From: Schmidtea polychroa
Lineage: Eukaryota
Direction: 5' to 3'
Length of the DNA stretch: 64,000 bases
Assembly: GCA_044892525.1 (NCBI GenBank)
Contig: CM097888.1
Location: 45,818,001 to 45,882,000 of the forward strand
A model generated the notes under the pieces. The model had not been told where the DNA came from, ran no database searches, and was given only the letters and a program-made list of their open reading frames with translations. A program made the position numbers and the translations under genes. Numbering within the stretch: position 1 is the stretch's first letter; the number at the start of each line of letters is the position of its first letter. Below are positions 14,664 to 46,984 of the stretch, one piece after another.

Positions 14664-15404
14664 ATGTCATTAGCTTCGTGCTCAAAATGTAATAGGTCTT
14701 TCAATTTCGATAGTTTAAAAGTACATGAAAAGATATGTCGAGGCCAGTTTTTATCAAAACAACCATCAAAACCTTCTGGAATAACATTTGGTAGAAGTAT
14801 GGACATAGATGAAAGCATTCGTGACGACTCTGAGATAGATATTCCAAATAACTTCAAAGTTACACCGGAATCAAAATTTGTTACTTGTAAATCTTGTGGT
14901 AAAACATTTACTATTCATTCTATTACCAAGCATACTGTGGCCTGTGATTTGCGTGCAGAACGGGAACGAAAAGAGCAAGAATTACAACGAAAACATGAAG
15001 CTGGTCCACAACATATCGGTCGGTTACCAGGAGCAGTTTGCTATATATGTGGTCGAAATTTCGGCACCACGTCAATTGATATCCATGAAAAACAATGTCT
15101 AGAAAAGTTCAGAAAACAAAATGCGGAATTGCCGAAAAAAGAAAGACGAGCTGAACCAGTGAAACCACAAACGAATAAAGAAATATTAGAACAAATGGTT
15201 AAAGAACAAAAGCTTAAAGGCAATGTAACCTACAATGAGCAAGCTGCAATGAATGATGCAAAAGCCATTGCTTATAATCAAAATTTGGTTTCTTGTCCAA
15301 ATTGTTCTCGTACTTTTAATCCTGATGCCTTAAAGTTTCATGTAAAAGCTTGCACCAACAAACGACCAGCAAGAAAAATTGGTGAAGAAACTGTGCATCG
15401 TTGA
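14664..15404 (+). CDS. ZNF474: C2HC zinc-finger protein with four CxxC...H...C fingers, ZNF474-like
   Basis: Intact 246-aa ORF with CSKCNRSFNFDSLKVHEKIC, CKSCGKTF..HTVAC, CYICGRNFGTTSIDIHEKQCLEKF..LPKKERRAEPVKP and CPNCSRTFNPDALKFHVKAC. A 5' exon near 14450-14527 is possible. Confidence 0.75.
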   Translation: MSLASCSKCNRSFNFDSLKVHEKICRGQFLSKQPSKPSGITFGRSMDIDESIRDDSEIDIPNNFKVTPESKFVTCKSCGKTFTIHSITKHTVACDLRAERERKEQELQRKHEAGPQHIGRLPGAVCYICGRNFGTTSIDIHEKQCLEKFRKQNAELPKKERRAEPVKPQTNKEILEQMVKEQKLKGNVTYNEQAAMNDAKAIAYNQNLVSCPNCSRTFNPDALKFHVKACTNKRPARKIGEETVHR

Positions 15405-18354: not shown

Positions 18355-20324
18355 TTAAGCATAGAATGTTTTACTTACAAGTGCGTTGAGGAGGTCGAAT
18401 TCCTCGTCCTCGTCGTTGCTCTCATTAGAAAGGTATTCATTATGTTTATCGAACATATTAATGATATTCCTTTTGAAATTGTTTGAGTTGTCGTTTTCTT
18501 TCATTTGGCGATGACCTAGGATTATCTGATTTGACCTTTCACTCAAATTTTCCATGAATATTTTTGTAGAAAATTGATGACGCGAATTATTTTGCATATG
18601 ACTTTTGATAAATATTTCACTATTCAGTGAACAAGATAAAGAATTTACATCCAAAATTTCTGATTTCTCCGCTGTTTCGATTTCGACTTTTCTTTGGTTA
18701 TTATACATTTGGTTGTTTTTTTCCGACCAATCATTTTCAAACAATTGGTTGTTGAATTTAATTCTTTGGCAGTTTCCATTAAAATTTGAAGAATTCGTCG
18801 GATCATTTCCGCCTTCTCCGTCATCTCCTCCTTCACCTTCGCCTTCCTGGACAACGATTTTCGGTCCTTCACCTTCTTCACCGGCATCAAGATCATTCTT
18901 TCCTAAATTCCCCTGTAAAAATCTAGTATCAACTGATACTTCTTCATAATCTTTGGCTAGGCTTGCTATGTTATATAAAGCTTCACAGAATTCACTTTCT
19001 TCTAGTCCTTCTGCAACAAACCAGTGTATAAAACTTCGTTTAGAATAGAGTCGGTGAAACTTTTGTGAAAGACGCTGCCAAACTGCACTTACTGCAGATG
19101 AATTTGTCATCATAACGACACTGCATGGTGTATCTCCAATGAAGCTTTGAGGCAAAATCAGAGGAGGCTGATCAACAATGCCAACTTTGAATCCAGTTGG
19201 ACACCAATCAACGAATCTATTATATTTACTCGACTTTATTATCGATAAGGTAGAAAAGACTTCAGAAGTGTTCACAAGACCTCTATAAACCAAAGAGCAA
19301 GTCATATATTTTCCAACGTTAGGATCACAATTGACCAACTGATGTTCTCGTTCAAAAACCGCTCTTGTAAGATCTATAATGGAATTCTTCTCGTGTTCAA
19401 TTTGTGCAACATTTCCAAGTGGCGCAAAACTAGTTAATGGAAAATGAATTCGAGGATATGGTACAAGGTTTGTCAAAACAGCATTGATATCATTAAACAT
19501 GTCGCTTTGGAATCTGGATGAAGCGGTTATGTTACTGTTGACTTGTCCCAGAATCCGATTAATGCTTGTCATAGTCGGATGTTCTATGCCCAAAATGTTG
19601 CAACAAATATCAAATAAAGCTTCATTATCTAACAAAAGACCAACATCGCATTCTTCCATGCAAAAATGTTCCCCGAGAATACTGTTATACGGTCCTACGA
19701 CACAACTGTCAAAATGAGGTGAAGGATGAATTGGAAATTCAAATTTTATAGTTTTCTTATAATCTTCTAAGAGTTCAAATATCATTGATGTTAAACCAGA
19801 TCCTGACCCCCCTGCCAGTGATCTATAAAATAGCATTGATTGCATAAAATCACATGATTCAATTTGTTTTCTCATTTTATTTTCAATTGATTTGTATATT
19901 AATCTTCCCACTGTATTGAAGGCTCTTGAAAAGTTTGAAGAACTGTCATCGCACCCGCTAATTAATTGAGAGGGGTGATATAATTTTTGATATGATCCTT
20001 TTTTTAACTGATCTAAAAATGATAAATGTGAAATATCAATTAATAAAATCGGTTACTAATGACAGTTGGTTCTAGATCTATGAACAATCCTCTGGGAACG
20101 TACTGGCCAGAATTGGATTCGAGAAAAAAAGATGCAAATGCACGGTCTGAGTCCTCCCTATCGATTGTACATTTACCATCCCGCTGGATTCCATGTTCGG
20201 CGCATAATAATTCCCATATGGAATACCCTATCTGATTGCCAGCCTGGCCGACATGAATCGAAATTATCTCCCTCTAAAGTCAAAGGCATAACAACAAATT
20301 TACTAAAATAAACAATTTTACCAT
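18355..20324 (-). CDS. TUBA: Highly divergent alpha-tubulin with long C-terminal extension (~625 aa)
   Basis: Exons 20324-20322 (ATG), 20273-20057 and 20012-18355; introns 48 and 44 nt; total 1878 nt, in frame. Motifs [85 protein letters not shown]. Exon 1 choice is inferred. Confidence 0.9.
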
Positions 20325-21479
20325 AATAATTCAAATTCTAATCAATAATCATTTTGTTATTGTAAATAAATATTTACAGATACTTACAATTTTTTGATCT
20401 ATTTTTTGAAAGATTTTGTTAATTTTCGAAGAAATCTCAGAAACTTTTCGGAAAATCTTGTTGACTGATTTCTGATTTGTTTATACTAACCAATTTTTTT
20501 GAGAAGGCAACGCGGAACGGAAAAGATTTTTGAAACGAATTCAAAAACTGAAACATAATTTTAATGAATTTAATTTAAAATTTATATCATAAATAAATTA
20601 CTTGCGTATTTCTGTTTTATCTGCCGTTTCTTGGTAAAATAACTCAACCAAATCTCACTCATCAAGTCTTCTATAGCCTACGTAGATTTTGGGTTACATA
20701 AAATTAAATATAAAATTAATTCAAATTCAAATTATGCGAAAAACAAATTTAATTTAAAACTAATATTTTTATGACGACATTAATCTTTTCATTTGGGAAA
20801 ACAAAATCATCGAGTTTAAAAGACCGGATTATAACATAATTCAGACATCAAAATTGCATTTTCTAGTAAAAAACCACTTTGACTTTCTAGGTCCAATTTT
20901 CTTCTTCGCGATGGATCAGCTGGTACTCAAACTACCCTCGGGGTTACGTATCACCACCTACTGAAATATCCACATTACACATTTGACCGGATAATTCTAA
21001 ACTTGCAATAGATCGGTGTTGTAAATTTTAAACCTTACATAAACATTCTTACTCAACTATATACTTGATGGAGAATATCATGTAGAAAGCTTCCTTCTAC
21101 ACCTGATTTGTTTGATTATCCACATAGAAATAGAAGGCGAAATAATTATTGTTTTCAATTATGTTTTATTGCTAAAAAGATTTATTTTTCTGCAAAGTTT
21201 ATTTAATATTAATTGGTCATATAGTATTTTTATATTTATCTATATTTATGATTTGTGTGACATATTTATACAAATCAGCTATTATCAGTCACTAAACAAT
21301 TTCAATAAAAACGATTTACTTATAGGTTTGTTAGTAATGCGTGTAATCCAATAATTTGTATTGATCTTAATAAAATTAATTAAACCCTCAAAATACTCTT
21401 GGTTAATGTAACGTTTCACAAGTAATACATTACCAGTAGTTTTTGAAACCCTTAACACTTTAAAATTGGAAATGTCTGT

Positions 21480-24478: not shown

Positions 24479-27072
24479 CAGCGGTTCCCAAAGTGTGGGT
24501 CACGACCCACTGGTGGGTCGCGAAGCTATTTTCGGTGTGTCGCCAAAAATTTAATATTTGTATTACTGAGCATATTAATTTGCTTTTACTTAACTTGTCA
24601 CAATATTTATATATAAGTAGGTTTGCGACAAAAAATTATTGCATATTTTTAGGTGGTTTAAAAATTAAACTTCTTTTTAGCAAATCTTTGTATTTAGAAC
24701 TTGTTTTTAATAATCGCATCATAGCAACCACTTTTCTACATTTTAACCAGGCAACCAAACACAAATAACGGTTAATTAGAAATTTAGGATTACAAACTTT
24801 AAATATTCAGACAACCAGTGCAAATTTTGTTTTGGACTAAGTACGGTGTTGTGTTGTTAATAAAAAAGTTTATATATATTGTTAATAAAAGTGTTTCGTT
24901 AATAAAAAAACATAATTTAAAATCAAATGTAAGTATTTTTTAAATTTAGTGCTATAGTATTTCATGTAATAAATAAAGTTCTTAATATTCTTATTTTTAA
25001 AGAACCATTGCTGCGATGGATAAGTGGTTGAAAAAGACTCCTGGGCAAAATCAAACAATTGAAAATGAAAAAGAAAAAGAAGGTTCTGTAGCAACAAAAA
25101 CAGATAATAAGAGAAAATTTGGTGAGAATCCTTCAACAAGTTCGCAATCATCAAAACGTGGCAAAAGAAAATATGATTCTGAATATCTAAAATTTGGATT
25201 TACATGGAATAGAAAAGAAGATGATCCACGCCCACAGTGTGTTATTTGTCAAGAAATTCTGGCTAATGAAAGTATGCGACCTAACAAATTAATACGACAT
25301 TTTGAGACGAAACATTCCGATTTAAAAAATAAGCCTATTGATTATTTTAAAACCAAATTACAGGAATTAAATAATTCAAAAAATCTATTTTCTCGCTTCA
25401 TCAGCATTAATGAAAAGGCTATATTCGCCTCGTATCTCATTAGTTTGCGAATTGCACAATCCGGTAAACCGCACACTATTGGAGAGTCATTAGTACTTCC
25501 AGCTATAAAAGATGCTGTTGGAATTATGTTTGGAGAGCAGAGCTTAAAAGAAGTTGAATCAATTCCACTTTCTAATAACACAGTTGCTCGTAGAATTGAT
25601 GAAATGTCCGAATGGGTAGAAAATAAGCTTATCCATAGAATTCAAGTTAGTGGACTTTTTGCGTTGCAACTGGATGAATCAACCGATGTACAAGGTTTGT
25701 CCCAACTAATTATTTTCATACGTTTTATATGGTGCAACGAGTTCTTTGAAGACATATTATTTTGTGAACCAATCATTCGAGGAACTGGTGAAATAATTTT
25801 TGATACGCTCGACACTTATATAACATTGAAAAAACTGGATTGGAAAAACTGCGTCGGAATATGTAGCGACGGTGCAAAAGCAATGTGTGGTGCTGTGACA
25901 CGTTGTCTTCAAAAATGTCCAAATGCAACGTGGACTCACTGCACTATTCATAGAGAAGCGTTAGTATCCAAAAATATACCAAAAAGTGTAAATACTGTTT
26001 TGACCACTGCTATAAAAATTGTAAATTTTATTAAGAGCAAACCATTACAATCACGATTATTTCAAAAACTCTGCGAAGAGATGGGAAGTTTACATAAATC
26101 TCTTCTGCTGCATACAGAAGTCCGCTGGCTATCGAAAGGCAAAGTCCTGACAAGACTTGTTGAACTTCGCGAAGAAGTAGCAATATATTTACATGAACAT
26201 AAACAAGATGAGTACACATCAAATTTGCGCGATGTGAAATATGTAGTTTTGCTGACTTATTTAGCAGATATATTTTCGAAATTGAACGATTTAAATTTGC
26301 AATTACAAGGAACAAATGGAATTGATATATTTTCGGTTCATGGTAAAATAAAAGCTTTTACAAAAAAACTTATGTTGTGGAAAAATAATGTTCAAGAAAA
26401 TAAATATGACTGCTTTGATACATTCCAAACTTTTATCATTGAAAATGAAGTAACGCCCAATAACGATTTAATTTCTTTAATAATTGAGCATTTGGACAGA
26501 CTTAAAGAAAATTTTGATTTTTATTTCTATGGAGAAATGAAAAATCTAGAAAAATATACATGGGTTCAAAATCCATTTCAAAGTGGTTTAGTTACCGGTA
26601 TATCGACGATAGCGGATGAGGAATTAATTGAGCTATTCGAAGATAGTGTTGTTAAATTACATTTTGACGGTACGAAATTGTTACAGTTTTGGTTATCGGT
26701 GCAAAACACATATCCAACTTTACACACCGCAGCGTTAAAAGTATTGCTTCCTTTCACAACTTCTTATCTATGCGAGGTTGCATTTTCGTCAATGATTGCA
26801 ATAAAAAATAAATATCGCAACAAATTACAGCTATCAAACTCACTTCGCTTAATAACAACAAATATAAAAGTAAATGTCGAAGATGTTATTGCAAAAAATA
26901 GAAAGCAGGCTCATTCATCTCATTCATCCTATTAATTATTCTTAAATATGCGTGTTAAATAAATATGTAAATCAACATTTTTAGCTTTTTTCTTGTTTTA
27001 TTTACAGGTGGGTCGCGAAAACTTTGCGGTCTAAATAGTGGGTCTCGACTGGTAAAAGTTTGGGAACCCCTG
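24479..27072 (+). mobile_element. Full-length Buster-type hAT transposon (2594 bp)
   Basis: TIRs CAGCGGTTCCCAAA / TTTGGGAACCCCTG (1 mismatch); perfect 8-bp TSD CTTTAGAT (24471-24478, 27073-27080) with central TA; GGGTCGCGA subterminal motifs. Confidence 0.95.
25016..26935 (+). CDS. hAT/Buster transposase, intact 639 aa
   Basis: BED-like CVICQEILANESMRPNKLIRHFETKH; catalytic-region motifs LQLDESTD, CSDGAKAM, HCTIHREAL, EVRWLS and CEVAFS. Confidence 0.95.
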   Translation: MDKWLKKTPGQNQTIENEKEKEGSVATKTDNKRKFGENPSTSSQSSKRGKRKYDSEYLKFGFTWNRKEDDPRPQCVICQEILANESMRPNKLIRHFETKHSDLKNKPIDYFKTKLQELNNSKNLFSRFISINEKAIFASYLISLRIAQSGKPHTIGESLVLPAIKDAVGIMFGEQSLKEVESIPLSNNTVARRIDEMSEWVENKLIHRIQVSGLFALQLDESTDVQGLSQLIIFIRFIWCNEFFEDILFCEPIIRGTGEIIFDTLDTYITLKKLDWKNCVGICSDGAKAMCGAVTRCLQKCPNATWTHCTIHREALVSKNIPKSVNTVLTTAIKIVNFIKSKPLQSRLFQKLCEEMGSLHKSLLLHTEVRWLSKGKVLTRLVELREEVAIYLHEHKQDEYTSNLRDVKYVVLLTYLADIFSKLNDLNLQLQGTNGIDIFSVHGKIKAFTKKLMLWKNNVQENKYDCFDTFQTFIIENEVTPNNDLISLIIEHLDRLKENFDFYFYGEMKNLEKYTWVQNPFQSGLVTGISTIADEELIELFEDSVVKLHFDGTKLLQFWLSVQNTYPTLHTAALKVLLPFTTSYLCEVAFSSMIAIKNKYRNKLQLSNSLRLITTNIKVNVEDVIAKNRKQAHSSHSSY

Positions 27073-35955: not shown

Positions 35956-38900
35956 TTAAAGTGCTTGTTTCGATTTGCATTCATTTCTAGACATAGCAGT
36001 TGCAATATGCATTTGGCGAATCTTATAGTGACCGTAGGCATAACTTTCATTACAATTGTACCAATACCTTTTATCGTCCAAACATTGGAGAGCTCGTTTT
36101 TCTGTCATGAAAGTATACAACTGATGATTGACACTTCCTATTCTTTTTTGTGGGATGCTCACTGTTCCACCATCAGTATACACTTTTTTATAGGCTTCAT
36201 GTGTAAGATTAGAGTTTGTAAGTCTTATTCCTTTGGCTTTTAGAGTGTTTTTATCGCCTTGGAGTGAGTAGCACTTGGGTCGAAGAAACACCCATTCTTT
36301 ATATTGATTTCCTTTATTCTCATCCTTGAATTTCCCGATTACCGAACAAATTTTATCTGAGAACAATGGATCAGTCACTGGATAATTTGAAGTATCTAGG
36401 AGCCCATCGGCAATCATTTTTGGATATAGTTGTAAGCGTAAATCTACATTTTTACACTCTAAAAAGAAGGAACCTGTGTCTCCAGCAACGATATTAATTT
36501 GACAATTGAATTCGTCGCGATATTTTTGCAACTCTTCATACTGCAGCTGGTACATGCGAAGTTTGGATAAATCAAGTACGGTTTGTCCAATATACATTGG
36601 TCTATCTAAACACACAATTTCCTTATTGAGTATAACAGCAATGAGATCATCCGCAATCTTGATGCTACGACGAAACATAGGATTACTACAATAAGTTATC
36701 AATCTTTTGCTTTTGCTGCATAATCTCAAATTTATACGTTTCTTCAAGTTTTCCACAGTTTTACCGTATAAACTGTTGTTCTTTAACTTATAATAATCTC
36801 GCTGAAACGAATCTGTACTAGCTGCTCTCATTTTGGTATTGTAATCAATATAGCCTTTGAAAATAGCCACTTGCTTGAATTCTACAGCACGATTAACTTT
36901 TGTGACTTTTGCGCCGTAACTCAACCACTCTGTCAAAACTCTACCATTAACTACATAGTTTTTCTTAGGCTCATGAGTTAACAACAGCTTTTCAACTTTA
37001 CTACCAGGTGGATAACAAAGCTCAGGAGCTATAGGTAAATCATCTAGTTTATCTTGTATACTATCAGGAATGACGATGTCAACCTCTAGAACATATCCAA
37101 GATCTCCATCAAACTTATCCCCATTTGCACATCTTTCAACAATACCATTCATTTCAGTCTGATCATTTATCCATCTAAATTCACCAACAGGAAGTTTTTG
37201 CGACAGCGCCCATCCATATAAATTATTAACATCTAGGTATGACATTTGTGTTGATTCATCAGCTTCAACATGATGTTTGTTGATAAATGTCATTCCACCA
37301 CGAATACCAGCTTCAAATAAACGGTAAAGCTCTGGATCTTGAATAAGTTCTACTGGTTCAGGTAACTGTTTAATAGCTGATGCCCAACTTAATCCGGGTA
37401 TGGAAACAAACGATAGAGCCTCAAGTCCATCTTCGTCAAATGTTTTTTCTCTGAAAGCTTCAAAAACATCGGCCAACAGAAAAACATCCAACTTGAGATA
37501 TACTAGCATGTAATCTAGCAGTGTCTCACAGTTGTATTGTCGCCAGATTCGATTTGCATGTATATAATCTTCTTGACTAACTCCCTCCCAAATCGGTGGT
37601 AATTCTGTTATTGACTGTAAAACATCCATTGATGTAGCCATATCATAAGGAAATATGCCTTTACCAGTTATTAAATGCGAATTGAAAATCTTTGAAGTAA
37701 GTGGAAGACGTGGCAAGTTTTTTGATAAATTTGCCAAGCTGCTATTTAAAAATTGTAAAGAATCAATGAATCTAATTCTTCTGCCTTTCGATGTCGCTGT
37801 AAGTGTGAGAAACTTTTCTGTTGATTGAGGAATAACAATTAAATTCCAATCGGGGAATTTTCCAATTGCATATTTTAATATATGATGAATGTCATATCCA
37901 CGAAGATTATGAAATACAACAGGTAAAGACGGATTGATTCTTCTAGCCAAATTACAATCTTGACACGCTGCTCCGAGATATTGACCGGTAAAATGATCAT
38001 GATCCCGAACAGGTATATTGATAATCTTTTTACAAAGGTAGCAATGAGTTTGATTCGTAAATTCTTCCTGCTGTTCCCAAGTGAGTTCCATCATTTCCTT
38101 CGATCCATTAATTTTATACCACGGATAAACTATGTCTGTAGCTATATCATCCAATGCTTGTATAAACTGAATGATACAGTTTTTCCCAACAAATGTTTCA
38201 TTTCGAATCGGACAACCTTGATGAAGAAGCACAAATTCAGATGCAATCGGCTCATGTTTTTGGAAGTGCTTGTCATCTAGAGGTAATATTGATTCAAAGT
38301 CCGCGTAGACAACAAACTGCTGTTTTATAGTTTTACTCCAGTCTTTAAATTCGATATATTTATTCTCTGGCATTGAGTATAGAGTCGTCCGCTCCACATT
38401 CTTCCTACAAAGACCTATATGTCTTTCAAAAGCAGGACGTTTTTGAAACCCATGAAGACACGTATGACACCAATGTGATTGGATTCTGACTCCTTCTACT
38501 CTATCTCTGTAATTGAGCAGTCGATCGAGATTAGTTACAGCCAAAAAATGATAATTTAATTCTAAAATTTAGTTAATATTTTTAATGATTAAAAGAAATA
38601 TTACCTTCTTCAATCAATAAGAGATATAATTGACATCCCGTCGAAGTACTTCTATATACCAAGTCAACGAACGGATTCTTGAAAATATCATTAGTTTTTT
38701 GTTTAATTGGATCTTTATTATATTTGAGAACATTGATCGCTAGATTAGGATTCATTGCCTCAAATTGGCAAATGTTAACCAACTTCATTGGAAACCAATC
38801 TGATTTCCATTTTAACTCTAAATATATATATATATTTTTAGAATGATATAAATATATATTACCACTTAAATTATATTTCATTACTCTTTCTCTGTGGTGT

Positions 38901-39935
38901 TTTATGTCATCATAATGTAATACGGCCAGTATGCTATATAAAAAGCAGAATTGATCATTATTTTGAACATTAACTAAAGCCTGGCAGTTTTTCAGGTAAT
39001 TTGGCGTTTTAATGTAACTTGAACCTAAGTAAATATCTTGATTTATATATATAATAATGTAAATAAACTTACCAGATACATGTATTATGTCTGATAATTT
39101 AGTTAAAATCATAGTAACTTCTAATATTTTATGAATTCTCCACCCACTACTTTGTTGAGTGTATTTCTCCAACTTTTCTTTTAATTTTTCAATTCCATCA
39201 TTAATAAATGAAGATGACATTGTAATTGCTTTATTCGACAAACACCATTTTTTAATTTCACCATCCTCTTTGATAAACTCTGCACAAAGTCCAAATTGGA
39301 TTTTTACTGTACCCATTCGTTGAATATGATCTTCTATTTCTCTGATGAGACAATCTGGAACAACAATGTCAGGAGAATTAATTGCAGATACATCGCTTGT
39401 CAATTCAACACGAGAACCATTTAAGTCAGACTCCCGACGTGGACACAATTGTATGTTAGAGTCTCCATTTCCGTAAAATATTGACTTTCGTTTTGTGGTG
39501 CCAGAGTTTTGTCTAACTATATTTATAATTAATATTAAACAACTTAAATAACATAACTTGTAACATATTCTTTAATCTGCTTAGGATCGTATGATGTATT
39601 CATTTTCGATTGTACTATAAAAAATTAATAATTGTTAATAGTAGAAAGAGTATTACTTTTAGTGATCATCCTGCTCTTCGTTTCTTCGAATCTTCTAAGA
39701 TGGTGTCCGTGTTGTCGTACAAACATTAACCACCTACCTGGTGATATAATGAGACATTCCGGACATATGTAACCCGATAAGGTAGAGTCATTTATCTTGA
39801 AATATGATGATGTAACTGATTTACAGTTCTCTACATCTTCATGACTTTCGGCAATACAAAATTTATATAAACTGCATCCGTTCACTAAAAGAAAATAATC
39901 ATTAATATTAGATAGAGAATAAAAAAATATTCACT
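35956..39935 (-). CDS. Intron-containing protein-primed-type family B DNA polymerase, left-arm copy
   Basis: Mirror of 43005-46984; the three ORF translations are identical to the right-arm ORFs. Confidence 0.88.
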
Positions 39936-43004: not shown

Positions 43005-46000
43005 AGTGAATATTTTTTTATTCTCTATCTAATATTAATGATTATTTTCTTTTAGTGAACGGATGCAGTTTATATAAATTTTGTATTGCCGAAAGTCATG
43101 AAGATGTAGAGAACTGTAAATCAGTTACATCATCATATTTCAAGATAAATGACTCTACCTTATCGGGTTACATATGTCCGGAATGTCTCATTATATCACC
43201 AGGTAGGTGGTTAATGTTTGTACGACAACACGGACACCATCTTAGAAGATTCGAAGAAACGAAGAGCAGGATGATCACTAAAAGTAATACTCTTTCTACT
43301 ATTAACAATTATTAATTTTTTATAGTACAATCGAAAATGAATACATCATACGATCCTAAGCAGATTAAAGAATATGTTACAAGTTATGTTATTTAAGTTG
43401 TTTAATATTAATTATAAATATAGTTAGACAAAACTCTGGCACCACAAAACGAAAGTCAATATTTTACGGAAATGGAGACTCTAACATACAATTGTGTCCA
43501 CGTCGGGAGTCTGACTTAAATGGTTCTCGTGTTGAATTGACAAGCGATGTATCTGCAATTAATTCTCCTGACATTGTTGTTCCAGATTGTCTCATCAGAG
43601 AAATAGAAGATCATATTCAACGAATGGGTACAGTAAAAATCCAATTTGGACTTTGTGCAGAGTTTATCAAAGAGGATGGTGAAATTAAAAAATGGTGTTT
43701 GTCGAATAAAGCAATTACAATGTCATCTTCATTTATTAATGATGGAATTGAAAAATTAAAAGAAAAGTTGGAGAAATACACTCAACAAAGTAGTGGGTGG
43801 AGAATTCATAAAATATTAGAAGTTACTATGATTTTAACTAAATTATCAGACATAATACATGTATCTGGTAAGTTTATTTACATTATTATATATATAAATC
43901 AAGATATTTACTTAGGTTCAAGTTACATTAAAACGCCAAATTACCTGAAAAACTGCCAGGCTTTAGTTAATGTTCAAAATAATGATCAATTCTGCTTTTT
44001 ATATAGCATACTGGCCGTATTACATTATGATGACATAAAACACCACAGAGAAAGAGTAATGAAATATAATTTAAGTGGTAATATATATTTATATCATTCT
44101 AAAAATATATATATATATTTAGAGTTAAAATGGAAATCAGATTGGTTTCCAATGAAGTTGGTTAACATTTGCCAATTTGAGGCAATGAATCCTAATCTAG
44201 CGATCAATGTTCTCAAATATAATAAAGATCCAATTAAACAAAAAACTAATGATATTTTCAAGAATCCGTTCGTTGACTTGGTATATAGAAGTACTTCGAC
44301 GGGATGTCAATTATATCTCTTATTGATTGAAGAAGGTAATATTTCTTTTAATCATTAAAAATATTAACTAAATTTTAGAATTAAATTATCATTTTTTGGC
44401 TGTAACTAATCTCGATCGACTGCTCAATTACAGAGATAGAGTAGAAGGAGTCAGAATCCAATCACATTGGTGTCATACGTGTCTTCATGGGTTTCAAAAA
44501 CGTCCTGCTTTTGAAAGACATATAGGTCTTTGTAGGAAGAATGTGGAGCGGACGACTCTATACTCAATGCCAGAGAATAAATATATCGAATTTAAAGACT
44601 GGAGTAAAACTATAAAACAGCAGTTTGTTGTCTACGCGGACTTTGAATCAATATTACCTCTAGATGACAAGCACTTCCAAAAACATGAGCCGATTGCATC
44701 TGAATTTGTGCTTCTTCATCAAGGTTGTCCGATTCGAAATGAAACATTTGTTGGGAAAAACTGTATCATTCAGTTTATACAAGCATTGGATGATATAGCT
44801 ACAGACATAGTTTATCCGTGGTATAAAATTAATGGATCGAAGGAAATGATGGAACTCACTTGGGAACAGCAGGAAGAATTTACGAATCAAACTCATTGCT
44901 ACCTTTGTAAAAAGATTATCAATATACCTGTTCGGGATCATGATCATTTTACCGGTCAATATCTCGGAGCAGCGTGTCAAGATTGTAATTTGGCTAGAAG
45001 AATCAATCCGTCTTTACCTGTTGTATTTCATAATCTTCGTGGATATGACATTCATCATATATTAAAATATGCAATTGGAAAATTCCCCGATTGGAATTTA
45101 ATTGTTATTCCTCAATCAACAGAAAAGTTTCTCACACTTACAGCGACATCGAAAGGCAGAAGAATTAGATTCATTGATTCTTTACAATTTTTAAATAGCA
45201 GCTTGGCAAATTTATCAAAAAACTTGCCACGTCTTCCACTTACTTCAAAGATTTTCAATTCGCATTTAATAACTGGTAAAGGCATATTTCCTTATGATAT
45301 GGCTACATCAATGGATGTTTTACAGTCAATAACAGAATTACCACCGATTTGGGAGGGAGTTAGTCAAGAAGATTATATACATGCAAATCGAATCTGGCGA
45401 CAATACAACTGTGAGACACTGCTAGATTACATGCTAGTATATCTCAAGTTGGATGTTTTTCTGTTGGCCGATGTTTTTGAAGCTTTCAGAGAAAAAACAT
45501 TTGACGAAGATGGACTTGAGGCTCTATCGTTTGTTTCCATACCCGGATTAAGTTGGGCATCAGCTATTAAACAGTTACCTGAACCAGTAGAACTTATTCA
45601 AGATCCAGAGCTTTACCGTTTATTTGAAGCTGGTATTCGTGGTGGAATGACATTTATCAACAAACATCATGTTGAAGCTGATGAATCAACACAAATGTCA
45701 TACCTAGATGTTAATAATTTATATGGATGGGCGCTGTCGCAAAAACTTCCTGTTGGTGAATTTAGATGGATAAATGATCAGACTGAAATGAATGGTATTG
45801 TTGAAAGATGTGCAAATGGGGATAAGTTTGATGGAGATCTTGGATATGTTCTAGAGGTTGACATCGTCATTCCTGATAGTATACAAGATAAACTAGATGA
45901 TTTACCTATAGCTCCTGAGCTTTGTTATCCACCTGGTAGTAAAGTTGAAAAGCTGTTGTTAACTCATGAGCCTAAGAAAAACTATGTAGTTAATGGTAGA

Positions 46001-46984
46001 GTTTTGACAGAGTGGTTGAGTTACGGCGCAAAAGTCACAAAAGTTAATCGTGCTGTAGAATTCAAGCAAGTGGCTATTTTCAAAGGCTATATTGATTACA
46101 ATACCAAAATGAGAGCAGCTAGTACAGATTCGTTTCAGCGAGATTATTATAAGTTAAAGAACAACAGTTTATACGGTAAAACTGTGGAAAACTTGAAGAA
46201 ACGTATAAATTTGAGATTATGCAGCAAAAGCAAAAGATTGATAACTTATTGTAGTAATCCTATGTTTCGTCGTAGCATCAAGATTGCGGATGATCTCATT
46301 GCTGTTATACTCAATAAGGAAATTGTGTGTTTAGATAGACCAATGTATATTGGACAAACCGTACTTGATTTATCCAAACTTCGCATGTACCAGCTGCAGT
46401 ATGAAGAGTTGCAAAAATATCGCGACGAATTCAATTGTCAAATTAATATCGTTGCTGGAGACACAGGTTCCTTCTTTTTAGAGTGTAAAAATGTAGATTT
46501 ACGCTTACAACTATATCCAAAAATGATTGCCGATGGGCTCCTAGATACTTCAAATTATCCAGTGACTGATCCATTGTTCTCAGATAAAATTTGTTCGGTA
46601 ATCGGGAAATTCAAGGATGAGAATAAAGGAAATCAATATAAAGAATGGGTGTTTCTTCGACCCAAGTGCTACTCACTCCAAGGCGATAAAAACACTCTAA
46701 AAGCCAAAGGAATAAGACTTACAAACTCTAATCTTACACATGAAGCCTATAAAAAAGTGTATACTGATGGTGGAACAGTGAGCATCCCACAAAAAAGAAT
46801 AGGAAGTGTCAATCATCAGTTGTATACTTTCATGACAGAAAAACGAGCTCTCCAATGTTTGGACGATAAAAGGTATTGGTACAATTGTAATGAAAGTTAT
46901 GCCTACGGTCACTATAAGATTCGCCAAATGCATATTGCAACTGCTATGTCTAGAAATGAATGCAAATCGAAACAAGCACTTTAA
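43005..46984 (+). CDS. Intron-containing protein-primed-type family B DNA polymerase (~1236 aa), right-arm copy; motif C reads DTGS
   Basis: Exons 43005, 43056-43283, 43326-43382, 43424-43867, 43916-44077, 44123-44335 and 44379-46984 total 3711 nt, in frame. Motifs GSSYIKTP, NNDQFCFLYSILA, YADFES, DHDHFTG, FHNLRGYD, FIDSLQFL, KGIFPY, YLKLD, GIRGG, YLDVNNLYG, KLKNNSLYGK and GDTGS. First intron/start is least certain. Confidence 0.88.

Follow-up and report, generated by a model that had tools for sequence, protein, structure and literature searches.

Asp251 and Glu254 in T7/H8 form the catalytic pair of alpha-tubulin, and Glu254 is the residue that makes microtubules dynamic. Human TUBA1B tubulin carrying the engineered change E254A has no GTPase activity, nucleates strongly and gives microtubules that are stable all day, and with E254D hydrolysis is slowed and catastrophes almost disappear (PMC7018511). 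Sequence analysis of Toxoplasma and other coccidians has revealed a natural isotype, the long-tailed alpha3-tubulin, without the GTPase-activating residues (PMC10056924). For planarians, 62 alpha- and 8 beta-tubulin genes have been counted in Schmidtea mediterranea (PMC12579930). One of these 62 published alpha-tubulins, SMEST050487001.1 ('alpha.18' in Table S1), is the orthologue of the gene described here and was entered only as 'tubulin alpha chain-like', with residue 254 unremarked (PMC12579930). We find that this gene of Schmidtea polychroa is alpha-derived, though not a canonical alpha-tubulin, with Asp251 present and Glu254 lost.

The window analysed is a stretch of 64,000 nucleotides from chromosome 4 of S. 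polychroa at 45.8 Mb (assembly schPol2), and the tubulin gene lies on its minus strand at 18355-20324, with three exons encoding 625 amino acids. Exon 2 (20057-20273), which encodes the N-terminal part of the GTPase domain and ends in LEPTVI, is defined by its translation, a match to PF00091 (E 3.9e-16) and RNA contigs. It is followed by intron 2 (20013-20056; 44 nt, GT..AG, phase 1), which is absent from RNA contigs and occupies the same position in an orthologue from a third planarian (L071, listed as P0034 among the proteins; Logan run SRR33002330). Exon 3 (18355-20012) encodes the remaining tubulin domain and a C-terminal extension and closes with the stop TAA (18357-18355), as judged from its open frame, its Pfam Tubulin and Tubulin_C matches and RNA contigs. 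In two of these contigs (X1 record 7 and X2 record 14) 20012 is joined to 20057 with the 44-nt intron spliced out, and a contig from another study (X3 record 20) ends at 20012. The RNA contigs run unbroken from 20012 to 18343, so the whole 1.66-kb last exon, including the extension and the TAA, is in the mRNA. A frame running on by way of GTAAGT near 18378 as a donor was considered and rejected because the contigs are continuous to 18343.

At the 5' end, the initiating ATG (20322-20324), which closes exon 1 and has GTAAAA directly after it, was placed by inference. Intron 1 (20274-20321; 48 nt, GT..AG) separates codon 1 (Met) from codon 2 (Arg); its acceptor comes from RNA contigs and its donor was likewise deduced. 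The matches of X1 record 7 and X2 record 14 end at the AG acceptor (20274/20273) and are followed by 11 and 19 nt more; the depth of 0.97 in the bin 20312-20495 is exactly what the 19 nt would give. A layout of ATG/GT, an intron of 46-50 nt and AG/AGA or AG/AGG GAR is also found in two paralogues of the same genome, the canonical alpha gene L017 (46 nt) and L005 (50 nt), and an intron right after the ATG would be a feature that the window gene shares with this genome's canonical alpha genes. Since the layout matches that of L017 and L005 and the 19 extra nucleotides fit the bin depth, the ATG at 20324-20322 with the 48-nt intron 1 is the favoured first exon; ATG/GT at 20324-20320 would then yield the N-terminus MREIIS. 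An upstream exon ending at 20388 (ATT/GTAAGT) was rejected as a coding start, as it has no ATG and its frame is closed by TAA at 20483-20481. The segment 20388-20480 of the minus strand is similar to the S. mediterranea 5' exon and may be an alternative non-coding 5' exon. In this respect the orthologues differ: the alpha.18 transcript has another 5' exon, giving an N-terminal extension (MDISINH...VVDL), whereas the matching window segment (20480-20388) is without an ATG.

The C-terminal extension (18358-18936), 193 amino acids after DYEEV, is contained in mRNA contigs. It begins with an acidic Gly-rich stretch and continues as Asn/Ser/Glu-rich sequence, two islands of which are conserved in L071, and no Pfam domain was found in it. 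The first-pass annotation had taken the gene to be intact, and its open 625-codon frame, correct splicing and spliced transcripts in two studies agree with this.

The rest of the window contains several further features. Two identical sets of open reading frames (862 and 288 aa) form an inverted pair at 35956-39448 (minus strand) and 43492-46984 (plus strand). With its match to PF03175 (protein-primed DNA polymerase B; E 3e-31), the 862-aa frame points to two copies of a Polinton/Maverick-like element. A 639-aa frame at 25016-26935 (plus strand) with a hAT-family dimerisation domain (PF05699) is probably a hAT transposase, and a 246-aa frame at 14664-15404 (plus strand) encodes three C2HC zinc fingers (PF13913, E 4.7e-32). 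The segment 17472-17575 is of very high copy number: its word depth exceeds one million in the genome run and reaches thousands in RNA. Reads that run into it from the left contain ATACTTACCTGGC, a sequence resembling the 5' end of U1 snRNA; an Rfam scan of the whole 64-kb window gave no family at its gathering score. A truncated copy of a U1-like sequence or a repeat could account for this segment.

To place the encoded protein, we compared it with tubulins of known class. The best 60 PDB matches (phmmer) are all alpha-tubulin chains, at E ~1e-112, and Pfam assigns PF00091 Tubulin to two exon products (E 2.7e-29 and 3.9e-16) and PF03953 Tubulin_C (E 1.4e-37). The protein is 45% identical to canonical alpha and 30% identical to beta of the same genome, and in trees that left out gamma, delta and epsilon tubulins and apicomplexan sequences it falls in an alpha-like group that stands apart from beta at a support of 100/100; its phylogenetic position is thus with the alpha-tubulins. 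With canonical TUBA1A and TUBA1B it shares the same Pfam folds, about 44-46% identity over residues 75-440, the motifs GQAG, DLEPTV and DYEEV, Asp251, a further motif of 22 residues, and the alpha-specific S9-S10 insert, which aligns without gaps to alpha chains through residues 357-371 with 27% of the insert sequence canonical. It differs from them in Ala254, in a T7 loop with 2 of 8 residues canonical, in N101S, E183G and Y224M, and in its T4 'tubulin signature' (19795-19815, minus strand), which reads AGGSGSG instead of GGGTGSG and is AGGAGSG in L071. Helix H12 is also less acidic (R422L, E423Y, D424N, E429A), and the short acidic tail is replaced by the 193-aa extension. We take the following positions of the N-site to touch the subunit's own GTP. 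Among these, N101S, A99S, A100S, T145S, E183G and Y224M are changed, and Q11, D69, E71, D98, S140, N206 and N228 are kept. The six changes are conserved in L071 and absent from the rest of the clade described below. Because these changes lie at own-GTP contact positions, normal GTP binding by this subunit is uncertain.

The 32-residue segment that had first drawn attention to this gene lies at 19536-19441 on the minus strand. Alignment by phmmer to PDB chains runs without gaps through the stretch, as had been claimed, with a 17-residue segment of the window protein opposite RFDGALNVDLTEFQTNL. Within canonical residues 245-256, Asp251 is present and Glu254 is replaced by Ala, encoded by GCT at 19480-19482 (minus strand); in the window protein's own numbering the residue is Ala251, since the H1-S2 loop is two residues shorter. 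The T7 loop (19489-19512, minus strand) reads FQSDMFND for canonical FDGALNVD, and the degenerate change from GALNVD to SDMFND reported in the first-pass annotation is therefore real, as is the Glu254 substitution. Genome-run contigs (X4) show zero differing letters over the gene, and the Ala codon is unchanged in the RNA contigs X1 record 2 (18422-19640) and X2 record 13 (19187-19969), so that DNA and transcripts agree at this codon. Ala254 and the motif DINAVLTNL recur in S. mediterranea alpha.18 and in the third planarian, where the codon is again GCT. Ala254 is neither a sequencing error nor a product of chance.

Trees placed the window protein within a clade in which a small or hydrophobic residue stands in place of Glu254. 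In a quick tree of 99 rows it lies inside a 30-row clade (SH-aLRT 96) in which residue 254 is Val in 23 rows, Ile in 4 and Ala in 3. A careful IQ-TREE analysis without columns 244-256 recovered a 23-row clade at 94/92, the pairing of the window protein with P0034 at 100/100 and a 6-row sub-clade at 100/99. Single proteins from flukes (Fasciolopsis, Calicophoron, Clonorchis and Paragonimus), tapeworms (Echinococcus, Hymenolepis and Schistocephalus) and the monogenean Protopolystoma belong to the clade, together with several planarian paralogues. A profile search with the clade alignment returned mostly canonical alpha-tubulins, the sole additions being P0290, P0299 and P0303. Non-canonical residues fixed in the clade are Y103F, H139R, F141L, T191E, T382S, M398L, R422L, D424N and E429V/A, and the window protein has F103, R139, L141, E191, S382, L398, L422, N424 and A429 at these positions. 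Such fixed residues mark an old, constrained subfamily and not decay, and the Ala254 gene is one member of a flatworm-wide group and no singular oddity. Four parasite proteins (P0082, P0083, P0098 and P0103) stop 6-12 residues past DYEE(A/V), lacking an acidic C-terminal tail; these fluke and tapeworm proteins would be without the usual glutamylation and tyrosination sites.

Conservation is unevenly spread over the clade, using region boundaries that we assume. The most conserved regions are T4 (0.27 bits), T3 (0.50) and the H11-H12 loop (0.56), with S9 also among them. The most variable are the M-loop (2.17 bits), H3 (1.77), T7 (1.59) and H10 (1.57), and the S9-S10 insert too; in canonical alpha-tubulins, by comparison, the M-loop, H3, T7 and H10 are nearly invariant. 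This pattern suggests that nucleotide binding and beta pairing are retained and that lattice contacts are free to change.

Our preferred reading, to which we give a probability of roughly 0.5, is that the protein would be a beta-pairing alpha isotype that cannot set off GTP hydrolysis, with a stabilising effect on any lattice it joins. It would pair with beta-tubulin, since the clade is most conserved in T3 and T4 of the N-site and in the H11-H12 loop, parts that we take to form the face meeting beta within the dimer. Its T7/H8 face, seated on the beta of the next dimer, would then fail to activate GTP hydrolysis by that beta, and the interface would stay GTP-like and stabilise the polymer, in the manner of the engineered human E254A tubulin. 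Such polymers may also have different binding partners, owing to the long C-terminal extension and the changed surface of H12. The engineered TUBA1B E254A and E254D tubulins (PMC7018511; PMC8764682, PMC11893814) have the same residue replaced, by Ala in E254A, and this shared change is the ground for predicting that GTPase activation is lost and that lattices are stable and of the GTP type. They are, however, single-site mutants of a canonical tubulin, whereas in flatworms the substitution arose naturally and long ago, and the window protein also departs from canonical alpha at about 55% of its other residues, lattice-contact loops included.

The coccidian alpha3-tubulin resembles the flatworm protein in the loss of Glu254 and in an unusually long C-terminal tail, and there too polymer stabilisation has been predicted from sequence only (PMC10056924). 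In alpha3, D251 is changed to Thr and E254 to Gln or His; the flatworm clade, by contrast, retains D251 and carries Val, Ile or Ala in the place of E254. The N-terminus is MPREI in alpha3 and most likely MREI in the window gene. Common descent of the two seems unlikely, because every named near relative of the window gene is a flatworm protein.

Because the M-loop, H3, T7 and H10 vary within the clade, ordinary incorporation into a lattice is not assured. A less likely alternative, but one to be taken seriously, starts from the contrast between these regions, the clade's most variable, and the conserved T3, T4 and H11-H12 loop: the protein would pair with beta, and its altered T7/H8/H10 face would make no normal longitudinal contact, so that it would serve as a minus-end cap, a lattice terminator, a sink for beta-tubulin or part of a non-microtubule polymer. 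The first-pass annotation had likewise named capping and non-polymerising tubulins as options, and the N-site changes of this lineage, together with the variable lattice-contact loops of the clade, speak for keeping them in view; the blocking of hydrolysis and the use in sperm or cilia that it also suggested would follow by analogy with engineered E254A tubulin. The roughly 60 alpha-like loci of this genome and the excess of alphas over betas in S. mediterranea (62 versus 8; PMC12579930) leave room for alphas outside the lattice, and the parasite members without an acidic C-terminal tail also fit. Yet His283 and Glu284 of the M-loop, strands S7-S9 and an 11-residue stretch of H8 are retained, and engineered E254A tubulin polymerises well (PMC7018511).

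It is improbable, in our view, that hydrolysis has instead been re-wired, with Asp251 and an acidic residue at 247 (in SDMFND) partly replacing Glu254 to make a slow GTPase activator. Asp251 is present in nearly all clade members, but human E254A retains Asp251 as well and is nonetheless GTPase-deficient (PMC7018511). Asp or Glu occupies position 247 in the window gene, P0034, L002, L003, P0065 and P0066, whereas most of the clade, including all parasite proteins, has Val, Ile or Thr there. A shifted acidic residue has likewise been remarked on for Toxoplasma alpha3 (PMC10056924), and human E254D indicates that partial activity is possible (PMC7018511).

To assess whether the gene is maintained, we compared its transcripts and orthologues. 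Between the RNA contigs and the assembly there are 12 SNPs, of which 10 are synonymous and 2 non-synonymous, the latter both within the C-terminal extension; with 378 synonymous and 1494 non-synonymous sites, pN/pS is about 0.05. For S. mediterranea the comparison covers the first 273 coding bases and the ~355 residues printed in Table S1 of PMC12579930. The aligned ~355 residues show 14 differences, and the 22-residue and TMTSINR motifs are the same in the two proteins. A hand count against the transcript gave ~20 synonymous and 5 non-synonymous differences in the 273 nt, and dN/dS is thus about 0.05, not near 1, the value that would have counted against the first-pass reading. The third planarian is more distant: in the tubulin domain pS is 0.84 (saturated) and pN 0.136, and L071 is 79% identical to the window protein, with the same two intron positions. 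It shares the odd residues Ala254, Gly183 and Met224, and its C-terminal extension is 30% identical to that of the window gene, with conserved islands. The window gene is under strong purifying selection. The idea of a decaying duplicate without a function of its own, a pseudogene in the making, might draw on the very large family (at least 68 alpha-like loci) and on the lack of a dd_Smed_v6 transcript id for the S. mediterranea orthologue in Table S1, a hint of little or no expression in asexual animals, but it is effectively refuted by the open 625-codon frame with correct splicing, by 10 synonymous against 2 non-synonymous SNPs, by the dN/dS against S. mediterranea and by the identity and odd residues kept in L071 across saturated synonymous divergence.

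The wider repertoire of this genome was also surveyed. We took 68 alpha-like loci from it, with 61 unique sequences, and residue 254 is Glu in 30 of the 68 loci, leaving 38 without Glu (Gln in 18, Val in 10, Asp in 4, His in 2, and Ala, Ile, Ser and Leu in one each). A second large planarian alpha-like clade has Gln254 and comprises the 18 loci, among L031-L063 and others (for example G000:C2:126617995-126619083). Five canonical alpha genes (L017-L026) occur twice, at G000:C3:106.36-106.45 Mb and 106.92-107.01 Mb, with identical scores and a constant offset of ~563.5 kb; the two sets represent either a large segmental duplication or a haplotype that was not collapsed.

In the open-access literature we found no paper on the flatworm clade or on the share of planarian alpha genes without Glu254, and a search for tissue expression in open-access paper text did not find SMEST050487001 or the dd_Smed ids of the sister paralogues. 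A 2011 paper on reproductive markers mentions only an antibody to delta2-tubulin. Fasciola isotypes described in 2008 reach down to 72% identity, and the Glu254-less flatworm clade is therefore not among them.

A broader proposal is that flatworms set microtubule stability by gene, with dedicated hydrolysis-incompetent alpha isotypes from which particular cell types would build non-dynamic, GTP-locked lattices or caps; we put this forward tentatively, as a possibility we would not count on. It would treat Val/Ile/Ala254 as one old clade and Gln254 as another, together making up more than half of the planarian alpha repertoire, and it would look to sites such as sperm cortical microtubules, muscle or epidermal arrays. 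Dozens of Glu254-less alpha genes exist in a natural animal lineage under purifying selection, from planarians to flukes and tapeworms, and they amount to a natural experiment on the use of GTP-state lattices by cells. Such isotypes could explain the very large planarian alpha family (62 alpha versus 8 beta genes), and the clade points to a parasite-specific tubulin class.
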